DNA of 64,000 nucleotides from Bacillus subtilis subsp. subtilis str. 168 (GCF_000009045.1 NC_000964.3:2294001-2358000); one strand, 5' to 3'. Numbered from the stretch's first letter, positions 13,663-61,895 are shown. Notes: generated from the sequence alone by a model not told the origin. Numbers and translations are program-made.

Positions 13663-13784
13663 TGGCGTACTTGAGAGCATACGAAAATCGTGTGCTCTTT
13701 TTATTTATATTCAGCCATCAATAAAAGCGGTTACATTTTTTTATGGAACTTGCCCTTCTTTTGAAAAATAAGCCGTTTCGCAAC

Positions 13785-13813
13785 TTGACGGGTGCTCCCA
13801 GATGGTGTATAGT
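13785..13813 (+). promoter_or_regulatory. cspD SigA promoter
   Basis: TTGACG-17-TATAGT with TG just upstream of the -10. Confidence 0.85.
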
Positions 13814-13904
13814 TGAACCATCATTTAACAATGAATCAAAGTTAGATGATGACAAAATTTTTTTTAGCACATGGGTGCTACAGTACTAGGAGGAATTAAG
13901 CAAT

Positions 13905-14105
13905 ATGCAAAACGGTAAAGTAAAATGGTTCAACAACGAAAAAGGATTCGGCTTCATTGAAGTTGAAGGCGGAGACGATGTATTTGTTCACTTCACAGCT
14001 ATCGAAGGAGATGGATACAAATCATTAGAAGAAGGACAAGAAGTTTCTTTTGAAATTGTCGAAGGTAATCGTGGACCTCAAGCTTCTAATGTTGTAAAAC
14101 TCTAA
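13905..14105 (+). CDS. cspD: Cold-shock protein D
   Basis: RNP1 KGFGFI, RNP2 VFVHF; AGGAGG RBS. Confidence 0.97.
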
Positions 14106-14130
14106 ACTCAATACATGATGATGAGATGAC

Positions 14131-14163
14131 AAATAGAGGAGAGGCATTCGCCTCTCCTATTTG
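14131..14163. terminator. Bidirectional terminator cspD/degR
   Basis: GGAGAGGC-ATTC-GCCTCTCC stem with A/T flanks. Confidence 0.8.
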
Positions 14164-14339
14164 ATTTTCATCTGGATTTCAATCGCCAAAATGTTTTGTT
14201 TACACCTCTGTTCAATCTCTTCAACATACTTTTCCATTGATGGTTTTCCTTTTTTCGCGATATCGGCCAGTTCTTCTAAATCACTGTATATTTCTATAAA
14301 TGTTTTGTGAAGGATCAACTTCAAGTCTTTATCATCCAT
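14157..14339 (-). CDS. degR: Degradative enzyme activator DegR
   Basis: 60-aa MDDKDLKLILHKTFIEIYSDLEEL recognised. Confidence 0.9.
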   Translation of the reverse strand: MDDKDLKLILHKTFIEIYSDLEELADIAKKGKPSMEKYVEEIEQRCKQNILAIEIQMKIK

Positions 14340-26088: not shown

Positions 26089-26127
26089 TGATATCACAAA
26101 AAACCGTACACGTGCGGTTCCATTGCT

Positions 26128-26196
26128 CACCCATAGTCGGACATTTACGGTGCCCGGTAGAAACTTGCGTGCCATATCCACGCGATTATATGAGTG
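26128..26196 (-). ncRNA. Guanine-sensing purine riboswitch aptamer (xpt-pbuX)
   Basis: CACUCAUAUAAUCGCGUGGAUAUGGCACGCAAGUUUCUACCGGGCACCGUAAAUGUCCGACUAUGGGUG, with discriminator C in CCGAC. Confidence 0.98.
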
Positions 26197-26259
26197 TTCC
26201 TATTATATTGTAATAAATTATATCAAGATTCTAATCTCTTGCATAGGCTGAAAATAAAA

Positions 26260-37319: not shown

Positions 37320-37720
37320 AAGTGGTCTAACGTTCTGTAAGCCATGTTTTGTTCCATCGTACTGCAAACGGCTCATCACCTCGTACTCAGGCGGCAATCA
37401 TCTATCTACAGAAAGCATTCTGTCCTTCTCTCCGTTGAATTCCGTTAAGAAGGTTCCCCTACCAAAATTTGGGTTTCTCGCTCGAGGGGTTTACCGCGTT
37501 CCACTCTCACCATTTCTAGTGAGACTTCGTCACTGTGGCACTTTCAAGGATACTCAGCCATATCCGAAGACGTAGGCTTTTTTCCTGCCGTCAGCCTCTA
37601 AAGACTGCCCTAGCTTATGACTTCGCTAGGCACGAACACTACGGGCATCTCAGCACCGTGCGAGCATGGACTTTCCTCTACAGATTCAAGATCTGCAGCG
37701 ATTACCCGAACGTTAAGAAC
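37320..37720 (-). ncRNA. rnpB: RNase P RNA, type B (401 nt)
   Basis: 5' GUUCUUAACGUUCGGGUAAUCGCU, GAGGAAAGUCC and AAAACAUGGCUUAC P4 motifs; TTGTAA(37751-56)-17-TATAAT(37728-33) promoter; terminator at about 37274-37300. Confidence 0.97.
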
Positions 37721-47443: not shown

Positions 47444-50188
47444 ATGTCAGATCAATTTAACAGCCGTGAAGCTCGACGAAAAGCGAACAGCAAATCGAGT
47501 CCTTCACCGAAAAAAGGCAAGAAACGAAAAAAGGGCGGATTGTTTAAAAAGACCCTTTTCACTTTACTCATTCTGTTTGTTTTAGGCGTAGTCGGCGGTG
47601 CTGTTACATTTGCCGTCATGGTTTCTGATGCGCCGTCCCTTGATGAAAGCAAATTGAAGACGCCTTATTCATCAACGATTTATGATAAAAATGGAAAAGA
47701 GATCGCCGAAGTCGGCGCCGAAAAACGGACCTACGTCTCGATAGATGAAATTCCCGATGTTGTAAAAGAAGCCTTTATCGCGACAGAAGACGCTCGTTTT
47801 TATGAGCACCACGGGATTGACCCTGTCCGTATCGGCGGTGCATTAGTTGCCAACTTTAAAGACGGCTTCGGGGCTGAAGGCGGAAGTACGATCACCCAGC
47901 AGGTCGTCAAAAACTCCCTTCTTTCACATCAGAAGACGTTGAAACGGAAGGTGCAGGAAGTATGGCTTTCGATTCAGCTGGAGCGCAATTACTCTAAAGA
48001 TGAAATTTTAGAAATGTATTTAAACCGGATTTATTTTTCTCCTAGAGCATACGGAATCGGAAAAGCGGCGGAAGAATTTTTCGGCGTTACTGATTTAAGC
48101 AAATTGACTGTCGAACAGGCTGCGACGCTTGCAGGAATGCCGCAGAGCCCAACAGCGTACAACCCGGTCAAAAACCCGGATAAAGCGGAAAAACGACGGA
48201 ACATCGTACTCAGTCTGATGAAAAAGCAAGGATTTATTTCTGATTCTCAATATAACAAAGCGAAAAAAGTGGCAGTGAAAGACGAAGGCGTCGTGTCACA
48301 GAAGGAATATGAAAAAGCAAGTACAAACAAATACAGCGCATTTGTTGAAGAGGTTATGAAGGAAATTGATGAAAAATCTGATGTCGATCCATCTGCTGAC
48401 GGATTAAAGATCTATACGACATTAGATACAAAAGCACAAGATAAACTAGATGAATTAATGGACGGAGACACCGTCGGATTTACTGAAGGCATGCAGGGCG
48501 GTGTGACGCTTCTCGATACCAAAAACGGAGAAGTCCGAGCGATTGGTGCGGGACGCAATCAGCCTGTCGGAGGCTTTAACTATGCTACTCAAACTAAGGC
48601 ACAGCCTGGTTCGACCATAAAACCGATTTTGGACTACGGACCAGTTATTGAAAATAAGAAATGGTCCACATACGAACAAATTGATGACTCAGCTTATACG
48701 TATTCTAACGGAAAACCGATTCGTGATTGGGACCGCAAATATCTAGGGCCTATCTCAATGCGTTACGCTCTGGCCCAATCAAGAAATATACCTGCTTTAA
48801 AAGCATTCCAGGCAGTCGGTAAAGATACTGCTGTAGACTTTGCAAATGGACTCGGGCTTGGTTTAACAAAAGATAATGTAACAGAGGCCTATTCTATTGG
48901 CGGTTTCGGTGGGAACGATGGTGTTTCTCCTCTGACAATGGCAGGTGCATACAGCGCGTTTGGAAATAACGGAACGTATAATGAACCGCATTTTGTAAAA
49001 TCTATCGAATTTAACGATGGCACGAAGCTTGACTTAACACCAAAATCAAAATCAGCCATGAGTGATTATACTGCGTTTATGATTACAGATATGCTGAAAA
49101 CAGCTGTGAAGACAGGTACTGGACAGCTTGCACAAGTACCTGGTGTAGAAGTTGCAGGAAAAACAGGAACGACTAACTTTGATGATAATGAAGTCAAAAG
49201 GTACAATATCGCTAGCGGTGGCGCCCGAGATTCTTGGTTCGTTGGCTACACACCGCAATATACAGCTGCCGTCTGGACGGGAATGGGAGAAAACGAGGCT
49301 GGAAAGAAATCACTTTCAGCTGAAGAGCAAAAAGTTGCAAAGCGCATCTTCGCCCAGCTCATCGCCGATGTCGATGACGGAAGCGGATCATTTGAGAAGC
49401 CTGACAGCGTAGTGGAAGCCACCGTAGAAAAAGGTTCTAATCCGGCAAAACTGGCAGGGCCAAATACGCCAAGCGATAAGAAGCTCACAGAGTACTTTGT
49501 TAAAGGCACAGCTCCTTCTACTGTTTCTAAAACATATGAGAAAGAAGAAAAAGAGGAAACAGCTAAACTGTCTGGTTTAAACGTGAAATACGATAAAGAC
49601 AATCAATCTTTAACGTTAAGCTGGAATTACGACGGAGATGCGACCTTTGCTGTTAAGCAATCTGTTGACGGCGGCAGCTACTCGGAAATTCAAAACAGCT
49701 CTGCAAAAGAGGCAGTTATTTCGGGTGTGCAGCCAGGATCTGTATACAAATTCGAAGTAACAGCCGTCAGTGATGATGGCAAAAGTACAGCTTCCACATC
49801 TTATGAGGTGCCAAAAGCTGAAGACGATGAAGATAAAAAAGACCAGCAACAAACGGATGATGAAAAACAAGATGATGAGAAGACTCAGGATGATACACAA
49901 ACTGATGATTCTCAAAAAGATGACGGTCAGACGGATCAAGATCAGACAGATGATTCAACAAACGATCAAGACAAAAAACAAGACAATACGAACACCAATC
50001 CGTCCGACAACAATAACCAAGACCAATCAAACGATAATGATAACGACAACAGTAACAACCAGGATACGTCGGATGGTGATTCGAACTCTGGTAAGAATGA
50101 TTCAACAGGTTCTGACACGAATAAAAATAAAACAGACACATCTAATAAAACACAAACAAACTCATCATCCATTGAAAAAACAAATTAA
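47444..50188 (+). CDS. ponA: Class A PBP1 (transglycosylase, transpeptidase, FN3 domain, disordered tail)
   Basis: EDARFYEH, GGSTITQQ, STIK (SxxK), SRN, KTG. Confidence 0.98.
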   Translation: MSDQFNSREARRKANSKSSPSPKKGKKRKKGGLFKKTLFTLLILFVLGVVGGAVTFAVMVSDAPSLDESKLKTPYSSTIYDKNGKEIAEVGAEKRTYVSIDEIPDVVKEAFIATEDARFYEHHGIDPVRIGGALVANFKDGFGAEGGSTITQQVVKNSLLSHQKTLKRKVQEVWLSIQLERNYSKDEILEMYLNRIYFSPRAYGIGKAAEEFFGVTDLSKLTVEQAATLAGMPQSPTAYNPVKNPDKAEKRRNIVLSLMKKQGFISDSQYNKAKKVAVKDEGVVSQKEYEKASTNKYSAFVEEVMKEIDEKSDVDPSADGLKIYTTLDTKAQDKLDELMDGDTVGFTEGMQGGVTLLDTKNGEVRAIGAGRNQPVGGFNYATQTKAQPGSTIKPILDYGPVIENKKWSTYEQIDDSAYTYSNGKPIRDWDRKYLGPISMRYALAQSRNIPALKAFQAVGKDTAVDFANGLGLGLTKDNVTEAYSIGGFGGNDGVSPLTMAGAYSAFGNNGTYNEPHFVKSIEFNDGTKLDLTPKSKSAMSDYTAFMITDMLKTAVKTGTGQLAQVPGVEVAGKTGTTNFDDNEVKRYNIASGGARDSWFVGYTPQYTAAVWTGMGENEAGKKSLSAEEQKVAKRIFAQLIADVDDGSGSFEKPDSVVEATVEKGSNPAKLAGPNTPSDKKLTEYFVKGTAPSTVSKTYEKEEKEETAKLSGLNVKYDKDNQSLTLSWNYDGDATFAVKQSVDGGSYSEIQNSSAKEAVISGVQPGSVYKFEVTAVSDDGKSTASTSYEVPKAEDDEDKKDQQQTDDEKQDDEKTQDDTQTDDSQKDDGQTDQDQTDDSTNDQDKKQDNTNTNPSDNNNQDQSNDNDNDNSNNQDTSDGDSNSGKNDSTGSDTNKNKTDTSNKTQTNSSSIEKTN
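49825..50185 (+). repeat. Low-complexity D/Q/N/T/S-rich coding repeats (PBP1 disordered tail)
   Basis: Degenerate GATGAT..CAA..ACA units encoding QTDD/KQDD/DNN repeats. Confidence 0.85.
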
Positions 50189-50190
50189 AC

Positions 50191-50266
50191 AAAAAAGCCG
50201 TCACCTTTGGGGTGATGGCTTTTTTGGTACACAATAAAAAACCTCCCGTTTTAACAGGAGGTTTTA
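50191..50266. terminator. Back-to-back terminators of convergent ponA and ypoC
   Basis: AAAAAAGCCGTCACC-TTTG-GGGTGATGGCTTTTT and AAAAACCTCC..GGAGGTTTT. Confidence 0.85.
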
Positions 50267-50758
50267 TCGATTCATCGCATGATATTTATAAAAATGCTTT
50301 TTCATTTCGGTAATCAGCTCATCAAGCTGAATAAAGCAATGGTATTGGGTCGGCTTAAGAAGAATAAATTCCACTCGTTCAGCCCAATTAATCGGCTTTG
50401 CGGGATATGATTTCTCCCTCAGTTCTTGCCAATCGAGCGATTTCACCGGCTCACCTGCTGTCCAATGTAACGAAGCCAGCAAACACACAATGCCCTTTAA
50501 CATTTCGTTTTGGTCACATCTCGATTTTCGTGTTTGAAAGACTGGGAGAAGTGATGCTTTGATGTCATCCCACACTTCAAATAAAAGCGGAACGTATTTC
50601 CCGCTGTCCTCCCATGGCAAATCGCCTTGTAATTCCGTGCAGAAATCAAAATACACGGGATTGGTCTGCAAGGTTTTCTTCATATCCGAGGAACTCTTCT
50701 GGCCAAGACTGCGCAAGTATTGCTCATAGGAAGCCAACACTTCTTTTGCTTGCGTCAT
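50264..50758 (-). CDS. ypoC: Protein of unknown function, coupled to nth
   Basis: ATGA overlap with nth; KPINWAERVEFIL motif. Confidence 0.8.
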   Translation of the reverse strand: MTQAKEVLASYEQYLRSLGQKSSSDMKKTLQTNPVYFDFCTELQGDLPWEDSGKYVPLLFEVWDDIKASLLPVFQTRKSRCDQNEMLKGIVCLLASLHWTAGEPVKSLDWQELREKSYPAKPINWAERVEFILLKPTQYHCFIQLDELITEMKKHFYKYHAMNR

Positions 50759-59838: not shown

Positions 59839-60672
59839 TTATTTTCCCCCGTACAAGCCGTCAAGCACTGTCTGGTTCATTTGAAAGGAATGCTTTTGTT
59901 CAGGGAAAGCACGATGTCTTACATCCTGAACATATCCGCTGATTGCTGTTTCGATGGTTTCATCAATGCGCGTATATTGCTTTACAAATTTAGGTGTTCT
60001 CTCAACACCGTGGCCGATAATATCATGATAAACGAGAACTTGTCCGTCCGCTTTCACACCAGCCCCGATTCCAATGACCGGTATGCTTAGCGTCTCGGCA
60101 ATTTTGGCTGTGAGTTCTGCCGGCACACATTCCAGCACAAGCATCATAGCTCCTGCTTCTTCGCATTTTATACTGTCTTCTATTAATTTTTTGGCGCTTT
60201 GTTCGTCTTTGCCCTGTACTTTATAGCCGCCCAGTACGCCGACTGACTGCGGTGTCAAACCTAAGTGACTGACTACTGGAATGCCTCCAAGCGTCAATGC
60301 GCGAATGGATTCAAACACGCCTTCTCCGCCCTCAAGCTTCAGTGCGTCAGCTCCGCTTTCCTGAACGATAGCCGCTGCATTTTTCAGCGTATCTTCCTTA
60401 GACAGGTGATAAGACATAAACGGCATATCTGTCACAATAAAGGTATTCGGCGCACCCCTTTTAACGGCTTTTGTATGATGGATCATGTCCGCAACTGTCA
60501 CACCGACAGTTGAATCAAGGCCGAGGACGACCATTCCAAGTGAATCACCGACTAAAATCATGTCAACTCCCGCTTGTTCAGCAAGTTTAGCTGCCGGATA
60601 ATCATAAGCGGTCAGCATGACAATCGGTTCTTCAGACTCCTTCATTTTTAGAAAATCCAGTTTTGTTTTCAT
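59839..60672 (-). CDS. panB: Ketopantoate hydroxymethyltransferase
   Basis: LTAYD, LVGDSLG, DMPF, KLEGG, HLGLTPQ. Confidence 0.97.
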
Positions 60673-60913
60673 GTTTTCTCCTCCTCATGTTTAGAGGAGA
60701 TGATCTGCCGTTTTCTTCTGCAAGCCAAAAAACCTTCCGTTACAACGAGAAGGATTCTTCACTTTCTAAAGTTCGGCGAGTTTCATCCCTCTGTCCCAGT
60801 CCTTTTTTGGATCAAGGCAGACTGCTGCAATGTCTATCTATTTTAATAATAGGTGCAGTTCGCAGGCGATACTGCCCAATGGAAGTATACCAAAATCAAC
60901 GGGCTTGTACCAA
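60673..60913 (-). promoter_or_regulatory. panB promoter and structured ~200-nt leader with internal terminator
   Basis: TTGGTA(60908-13)-18-TGgTATACT(60884-89); terminator stem 60733-53 plus 6 U at 60727-32; RBS hairpin 60678-99. Confidence 0.7.
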
Positions 60914-60917
60914 CACA

Positions 60918-61895
60918 TTAGCCCAATTCGATATCGGCAGAATAGATTTTTTTAATGCCTTCGTTCGTTTCTAAAAGCAGAACGCCTTCATCATCTATAC
61001 CTAACGCCTTACCGTAAAAGGTTCCGTTTAACGTTCTGGCTCTCATATTAGTGCCAATACCGAGCGCATAGCTTTCCCATAAAAGCTTAATCGGCGTAAA
61101 TCCGTGCGTCATATAATCCCGGTACCGTTTCTCAAAGCATAGTAAAATATGCTGGATGACGCCGGCCCGATCAATTTTTTCCCCAGCAGCTTGGCTGAGG
61201 CTTGTCGCGATGTCCTTCAATTCATCTGGAAAATCATTAGGCTGCTGGTTAACGTTAATGCCGATCCCAATGATCACTGAACGTACGCGGTCTTCTTCAG
61301 CCTGCATTTCCGTTAGGATACCGACTGTTTTTTTTCCGTTAATCAAAATATCATTTGGCCATTTAATATCCGTTTGGATGCCTGCTGCCTCTTCTATTCC
61401 CTGCACAACAGCTACTGCAGCAAGCAGAGTCAGCTGCGGTGTTTTTTGGAGCGGAATGTCAGGCCGCAAAATCAGGCTCATCCAAACACCGTTTCCTTCT
61501 TGAGAATGCCATACCCTAGACATTCGGCCCCTTCCGGCTGTTTGTTTGTCAGCCACCACAAGGGTGCCTTCCGGTGCGTTATTATTCGCGAGCTCATGAG
61601 CCGTTTTTTGCGTGCTTGAAAGAACGTCATGGTAAATAAGATGCTGGCCCATCACTTCCGTTTTTAATCCAAAACGAATTTCGCTTTCACTGAGTTTTCC
61701 GGGTTTTTTGATGAGCCGATATCCTTTTCTTCTAACGGCTTCTACTTCATAACCCTCTTTCCGAAGCTCTTCAATATGCTTCCACACAGCAGTTCTTGAA
61801 CAGCCGAGAGCATCACTGATTTTTTGGCCGGAAATAAATTCATTGCCGGCCTGAGAAAATAATTCAATAAGGTCTTTTCTTAATGTTGACCGCAT
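60918..61895 (-). CDS. birA: Bifunctional biotin ligase / repressor
   Basis: N-terminal wHTH SRTAVWKHIE; QTAGRGR, KWPND, GIGIN. Confidence 0.97.
   Translation of the reverse strand: MRSTLRKDLIELFSQAGNEFISGQKISDALGCSRTAVWKHIEELRKEGYEVEAVRRKGYRLIKKPGKLSESEIRFGLKTEVMGQHLIYHDVLSSTQKTAHELANNNAPEGTLVVADKQTAGRGRMSRVWHSQEGNGVWMSLILRPDIPLQKTPQLTLLAAVAVVQGIEEAAGIQTDIKWPNDILINGKKTVGILTEMQAEEDRVRSVIIGIGINVNQQPNDFPDELKDIATSLSQAAGEKIDRAGVIQHILLCFEKRYRDYMTHGFTPIKLLWESYALGIGTNMRARTLNGTFYGKALGIDDEGVLLLETNEGIKKIYSADIELG

Follow-up and report, generated by a model that had tools for sequence, protein, structure and literature searches.

Protein-mediated attenuation in mRNA leaders of Bacillus is exemplified by PyrR acting on pyr, by TRAP acting on trp, and by ribosomal-protein leaders such as that of L20. 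A different kind of leader element is the guanidine-II (mini-ykkC) riboswitch, a pair of small tandem hairpins with conserved bases in their loops, which kiss, and this element was first thought to be too simple for metabolite binding. The pan motif is found upstream of panB, panC, and aspartate decarboxylase (panD) genes in three phyla, and its describers, who named B. subtilis among the carriers, suggested that it is a binding site for a dimeric protein (Weinberg 2010, Genome Biol 11:R31, PMC2864571). In-line probing of the pan RNA of Geobacter metallireducens with 1 mM pantothenate, CoA, or beta-alanine revealed no modulation (PMC2864571 supplement). The probed construct comprised a single hairpin and was exposed to these three compounds, and the authors warned that it may be inadequate (PMC2864571). 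According to their description, the alignment files published with the motif include predicted transcription terminators, and lines marking terminators are present for rows other than that of B. subtilis (PMC2864571). Our literature searches found no later paper identifying a ligand, a binding protein, or regulated termination for the panB leader, no Term-seq or reporter data for this leader in B. subtilis, and no published account of the downstream platform in Bacillaceae that is described here. Apart from the original description, these searches returned only genome and transcriptome papers listing the motif, among them transcriptome papers on B. methanolicus and Paenibacillus riograndensis.

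The window analyzed here is a stretch of 64,000 nucleotides from Bacillus subtilis subsp. subtilis str. 168. The minus-strand ORFs in its last 8 kb are bshA-like, cca, birA, panB, panC, panD, and dinG-like, and the 245-nt gap between the end of birA (60918) and the start of panB (60672) forms the panBCD leader region, which lies on the minus strand, as do all leader features given below. According to the ORF list, panB (3-methyl-2-oxobutanoate hydroxymethyltransferase) spans 59839–60672 with its AUG at 60672–60670, and is the first gene of panBCD. No regulator gene was evident in the operon order birA-panB-panC-panD. The comparison set consisted of 80 Bacillaceae panB loci whose PanB proteins were 65–98% identical to that of the window, and birA preceded panB in the same orientation in 79 of these loci. 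The whole panB leader folded better than all 200 of 200 dinucleotide shuffles (z = −3.6).

The preliminary description of this leader had suggested a search against the Rfam pan motif, and this search gave a full-length match to RF01749 at 60878–60787 on the minus strand, with a score of 69.7 bits (gathering score 36.2) and E = 3.5e-10 over the whole window. Model positions 1–92 of 92 were covered, so that the element is not truncated. Moreover, the segment 60982–60484 (minus strand) was identical at 499 of 499 nt to the row NC_000964.2/2354179-2353681 of the motif-defining alignment. Since this is the B. subtilis row, the panB leader is a rediscovered member of the published pan family, a real element that was already known. 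The preliminary description had referred to a pan motif predicted in some bacteria, which is correct, but it had not recognized this leader as the motif itself. With respect to the motif, this leader does not differ from the published family, both having tandem stems with two bulged A residues each in a panBCD 5′ UTR. The motif, whose end lies 114 nt from the panB start, is followed on the minus strand by panB, panC, and panD. It was present upstream of panB in 20 of 20 Bacillaceae loci scanned with Rfam, while the signature of hairpin 2 and its tail was found in 80 of 80 Bacillaceae panB loci. In a permissive Rfam scan of 60500–61100, pan was the sole match on the minus strand, T-box and S-box were unmatched, and the other match was a sub-threshold psRNA2 on the opposite strand. 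Consequently, T-box, S-box, and other curated leader families were rejected, and the earlier statement that the leader is not a T-box, S-box, or leader-peptide system holds, the ORFs opened by an AUG in the tail being unconserved. A permissive scan of the whole window returned no further pan-like elements, and therefore gave no sign of a local regulon.

Several other RNA elements were matched elsewhere in the window. A purine riboswitch aptamer (RF00167) at 26114–26213 on the minus strand scored 82.4 bits against a gathering score of 37 and is an ordinary known element, and the RNase P RNA of bacterial class B (RF00011) was matched at 37333–37713 on the same strand with 352.7 bits. The cspA thermoregulator model gave a full-length, sub-threshold match at 13753–14164 on the plus strand (63.7 bits vs. 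78, E = 1e-13), which may be the leader of a cold-shock gene. A Bacillaceae-1 RNA at 128–194 on the plus strand was near the threshold, with 31.1 bits against a gathering score of 35. The Thr_leader model matched 50162–50307 below threshold on both strands (36.2 and 33.6 bits vs. a gathering score of 55), which points to a palindromic hairpin of the terminator type more than to a leader.

The promoter that had been proposed for the panB leader is present as described. This predicted sigma-A-type promoter at 60884–60913 comprises a −35 box TTGGTA (60913–60908), an 18-nt spacer, and the extended −10 box TGgTATACT (60892–60884). It was the only promoter-like site in the scan, and since 1.6 such sites were expected in shuffles, the single match alone is no more than chance would provide. 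Among the relatives, a −10 box was found 4–11 nt upstream of the pan motif in 76 of 78 distinct promoter regions and was preceded by TGn in 61. This conserved spacing indicates that the pan motif begins at about +1 of a dedicated promoter, and the expected transcription start, at about 60878, coincides with its first base.

Both pan hairpins, as placed by the Rfam alignment, are stems with one bulged A per strand in a twofold-symmetric layout. Hairpin 1 (UGGGCAGU-A-UCgccugcGA-ACUGC-A-CCU) spans 60851–60878 with its bulged A residues at 60870 and 60854, and the 5′ hairpin GCAGU-A-UCG/CGA-ACUGC (60875–60855) noticed earlier is its inner part. An A/U-rich linker (60821–60850), whose length and sequence vary widely among relatives, separates it from hairpin 2 (CUGCCUUG-A-UCCaaaaaaGGACUGGG-A-CAG), which spans 60791–60820, has bulged A residues at 60812 and 60794, and was absent from the preliminary description. 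The bulged A residues were invariant on both strands, in 78 of 78 distinct sequences for hairpin 1 and in 79 of 79 for hairpin 2. The stems were nearly invariant as well, with compensatory changes in hairpin 1 from C-G to U-A (10 sequences) and from A-U to G-C (three sequences), while the loop of hairpin 2 ranged from 3 to 12 nt. Hairpin 2 also carries a U-U mismatch (60814/60798, p7-q5) adjoining the 5′ bulged A. This pair was non-canonical in 65 of 79 relatives, comprising U-U in 53 and A-C in 10. Being conserved and next to a bulged A, this mismatch resembles a recognition feature.

Directly 3′ of hairpin 2 lies a Shine-Dalgarno-like purine tail, AGAGGGAUGA (60783–60792), whose first two bases are the last two of the hairpin. 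The tail forms the 3′ end of the Rfam model, and GACAGAGGG was found with 0–2 substitutions in 81 of 81 leaders. It is the strand common to two predicted helices, an antiterminator helix and an anti-sequestor helix. The antiterminator helix consists of eight pairs, one of them G-U, between AGAGGGAU (60792–60785) and AUCCUUCU (60755–60748), the latter being the 5′ arm of an intrinsic terminator plus the two nucleotides upstream of it. The terminator (60727–60753) has the sequence CCUUC-U-CGU uGUA ACG-GAAGG followed by UUUUUU (60732–60727), and both it and the 8-bp helix that excludes it had been recognized in the preliminary description. Its stem of 8 bp with one bulge is weak (−7.4 kcal/mol), and a consensus terminator scan of 60400–61200 flagged none, probably due to the bulge. 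The terminator was nevertheless retained, since it is present in the minimum-free-energy fold, is followed by the U6 tract, and has counterparts at the same place in 67 of 77 distinct related leaders, with CCUUCU in the 5′ arm of 54 of these 67.

When 18 genera-level representative leaders were aligned and folded with RNAalifold, exactly the 8-bp antiterminator helix and no other was obtained, and it was kept in 14–18 of the 18 leaders. The duplex between the tail and the terminator arm had a median energy of −10.6 kcal/mol compared with −5.8 kcal/mol for permuted tails, and none of 200 permutations was as good. Duplexes at or below −9 kcal/mol were formed in 57 of 67 cases. A check for covariation across Bacillales had been proposed earlier. 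Within Bacillaceae, the extension of the tail:anti-SD helix described below covaries, whereas the antiterminator helix showed no compensatory change among the 18 representative leaders, both of its strands being nearly invariant. It is therefore conservation that backs the antiterminator, and this conservation could have another cause.

The second partner of the tail is the anti-SD element UCAUCUCCUCU (60693–60703), which can pair either with the Shine-Dalgarno sequence (SD) of panB or with the tail, in the latter case through 10 pairs with one bulged U. This long-range helix was not part of the preliminary description, which had identified the hairpin CUCCUC/GAGGAG occluding the RBS. The RBS-masking hairpin is indeed present at 60680–60699, with CUCCUC at 60699–60694, GAGGAG at 60686–60681, and the SD GGAGG at 60684–60680. 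The sequence CAUCUCCUCU occurred with no more than two substitutions in 61 of 77 distinct leaders and was located just 5′ of the SD in most leaders, and the anti-SD:SD duplex reached −8 kcal/mol or lower in 76 of 77. Since summed duplex energy often selected the terminator arm, which is also anti-SD-like, the anti-SD site was chosen by a motif anchor. Ten leaders of 200–400 nt (L010-L012, L028, L031, L035, L044, L045, L060, and L075) carried additional structured insertions, located either downstream of the terminator or in the interval separating the anti-SD element from the SD.

In the core of the tail:anti-SD helix, 92.7% of the cells were paired, compared with 47–68% when the partner was slid by 1–3 columns. 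The covariation of the core was not above that of its shuffles because both strands are conserved, and the support for the helix comes instead from the slid-register control and from the extension. Individual compensatory pairs were found, with tail A1 changed to G and its partner U changed to C in three Peribacillus leaders, and tail G6 changed to A with its partner C changed to U in Priestia endophytica and Gottfriedia. In B. subtilis, the extension is formed by GCCG (60774–60777), which pairs with CGGC (60710–60707) in the minimum-free-energy fold. The core is flanked by sequences that vary from genus to genus while remaining complementary. A partner-swap test from which the core was left out gave −4.7 kcal/mol for the own partner and −2.8 kcal/mol for swapped partners (p about 5e-5), and the outcome was the same with longer windows, which included the terminator arms, and with short windows.

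The two layers were not conserved to the same extent. The seven Peribacillus leaders (L046, L058, L067, L073, L074, L076, and L077), whose tails start with GGAGGG instead of AGAGGG, have as terminator a long hairpin, GACUAAA.../...UUUAGUC, which lacks complementarity to the tail. The leaders of the B. pumilus group (L006-L008) and Priestia endophytica (L052), at about positions 1424–1500 upstream of panB, have no terminator and keep the pan motif, the tail, the anti-SD element, and the SD, so that control in these lineages, judged from their sequences, would be translational only. The translational layer is therefore more widely kept than termination.

The competing folds were predicted to be of similar energy. 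The whole leader reached −63.2 kcal/mol with the terminator and a masked SD, and −61.8 kcal/mol with the tail:anti-SD helix and the terminator, while the nascent RNA ending at 60733 reached −37.2 kcal/mol in the terminator state and −35.4 kcal/mol in the antiterminator state. The folds in these pairs thus differ by only 1.4–1.8 kcal/mol, with similar values when both pan hairpins were enforced. In this model, the energies are close enough that a bound factor could decide between the folds, and gaps of only 1–4 kcal/mol do not indicate which state is the default.

These features can be arranged into a mechanism in which transcription would start at about 60878 from the extended −10 promoter, and the first 88 nt would fold into the two bulged-A hairpins, with the purine tail directly 3′ of hairpin 2. 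If the tail is free, it would pair first with the 5′ arm of the terminator, forming the 8-bp antiterminator and allowing RNA polymerase to read through, and would then pair with the anti-SD element via 10 bp and the covarying extension, leaving the panB RBS open. A factor bound to the hairpins would clamp the foot of hairpin 2 and probably the tail, so that the tail is withheld and the terminator forms. In RNA that is nevertheless read through in the factor-bound state, the SD would be masked by the anti-SD element. The factor may be a protein more readily than a small molecule, and would probably be a dimer that reports the pantothenate/CoA status.

We consider it an even bet that the panB leader is such a two-level OFF switch, acting by termination and RBS masking, with a factor on the tandem hairpins that is likelier to be a protein. 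The ON-state assignment, the protein nature of the factor, and the pantothenate/CoA signal are what we infer from this arrangement. The preliminary description had proposed ligand- or protein-controlled termination of panBCD, which is a reasonable reading in light of the conserved, mutually exclusive folds, but termination alone does not cover the case, as the masking of the RBS is more widely kept. The likened systems controlled by PyrR, TRAP, and L20-type proteins share with the pan leader a short conserved RNA site at the 5′ end, followed by competing terminator and antiterminator folds and by RBS masking, and in the scheme likened to them the bound protein would favor the terminator. Unlike the PyrR and TRAP sites, the pan site is a twofold hairpin with bulged A residues, and no regulator gene is evident in the operon.

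The OFF logic suits a biosynthetic operon and agrees with two other members of the pan family. In the published alignment, Anaeromyxobacter has a single pan hairpin with GGAGG directly after it and the panB AUG 8–9 nt later, and this position before the AUG indicates that the Anaeromyxobacter tail is a real SD. As read from the alignment rows without folding, this form appears to have no obvious alternative helix. For Caldicellulosiruptor, there is complementarity between the annotated terminator (5′ arm, GGCAGA) and the 5′ strand of hairpin 2. With somewhat less than even confidence, we suggest that the tail of the pan motif is an SD mimic, which serves as the shared strand for two outputs and is derived from a real SD like that of Anaeromyxobacter, under the control of a trans-acting factor or a CoA-pathway metabolite.

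The preference for a protein effector is based on the sequence-conserved stems, the twofold layout, the freely varying loops and linker, and the Anaeromyxobacter form, together with the dimer proposal of the describers and the absent response to the three probed compounds. A small-molecule riboswitch is a serious rival. In this alternative, the hairpins, either singly or docked via the bulged A residues, would themselves bind a small molecule from the pantothenate/CoA pathway, for instance pantoate, ketopantoate, phosphopantetheine, dephospho-CoA, or an acyl-CoA, and would act through the same tail platform. It remains serious because probing has covered only three compounds and a single construct, which contained one hairpin and about which the authors raised their own caveat (PMC2864571). 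The strict association with panB, panC, and panD leaders across three phyla (PMC2864571) also argues for it, as do the invariant unpaired nucleotides and a full expression platform with competing helices that are conserved, partly covarying, and nearly isoenergetic. Moreover, the platforms of the pan family vary by lineage, as is typical of riboswitches. Guanidine-II provides a precedent, being likewise composed of two small tandem hairpins with a variable linker, but it differs in where conservation lies, since the pan loops vary (3–12 nt) and it is the bulged A residues, together with adjoining stem bases, that are conserved in pan. For a binding pocket, neither a conserved loop nor a conserved junction is available, and in Anaeromyxobacter the SD follows directly after a plain hairpin that offers no obvious helix to bias in the unfolded alignment. 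The Geobacter RNA did not respond to 1 mM pantothenate, CoA, or beta-alanine (PMC2864571), and no ligand reported since the 2010 description was found in the literature searches. On balance, we regard direct metabolite binding as rather unlikely, and the protein-controlled switch as the preferred reading.

The remaining alternatives deny a role to the RNA hairpins or assign the choice of fold to another process. The terminator at 60727–60753 might merely be that of birA, with leader hairpins that have no regulatory role for panBCD. birA ends at 60918 without a terminator of its own before the pan promoter, and with birA preceding the leader in 79 of 80 loci, synteny does not tell the two roles of the terminator apart. 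This explanation is nevertheless highly improbable in view of the conserved −10 box between birA and the pan motif, the terminator arm that remains complementary to the pan tail, the nesting of the terminator within the covarying long-range helix, and the occurrence of the motif upstream of pan genes in phyla beyond Firmicutes. The terminator may have a double role, also ending birA transcripts. That the inverted repeats are DNA operators of a transcription factor binding just downstream of the promoter would fit near-palindromes at about +1 to +28 and +59 to +88 with arms conserved like half-sites, but this has a barely appreciable probability. Among distinct Bacillaceae sequences, 99 stem cells had G-U on the sense strand, a pair that would become an A-C mismatch on the opposite strand, compared with only 11 for the reverse case, and this strand bias is more in keeping with RNA than with a DNA operator. 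The bulged A residues break the symmetry of the DNA, the compensatory changes preserve RNA pairing, and at the RNA level the tail is part of alternative helices with the terminator and with the anti-SD element. Finally, attenuation by a leader peptide would have the AUG within the pan tail (60786–60784) open a six-codon ORF, MKLAEL followed by a stop (60786–60766), whose translation selects between terminator and antiterminator. Of 77 distinct leaders, 64 have an AUG at the equivalent place, and the ORF extends into the antiterminator region, but the AUG is absent in the other 13, the ORFs vary from 2 to 74 codons and have no conserved sequence, and the SD-like GAGGG is followed immediately by the AUG, leaving no spacer. 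Since the AUG is also accounted for by pairing with UCAUC of the anti-SD element, we attach almost no weight to this possibility.

The panB leader thus adds no new element to those already described, and what this analysis adds is the description of the platform downstream of the pan hairpins. The role of the tail as a shared pairing strand accounts for the conservation at the 3′ end of the Rfam model. Reporters and mutants can be designed in a tractable organism around elements whose coordinates are given here, namely the tail common to both helices, the arm of the terminator, the anti-SD element, and the four bulged A residues. The leader is of practical interest because B. subtilis with overexpressed pan genes is used for vitamin B5 production (PMC8247775). 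If the reading of the tail as an SD mimic is true, panBCD would be controlled at both transcription and translation by a factor that recognizes twofold bulged-A hairpins, and this factor could be a moonlighting enzyme of the pantothenate pathway acting as an RNA-binding dimer, or a CoA-pathway metabolite. The finding bears on how Firmicutes set the level of pantothenate and CoA synthesis.
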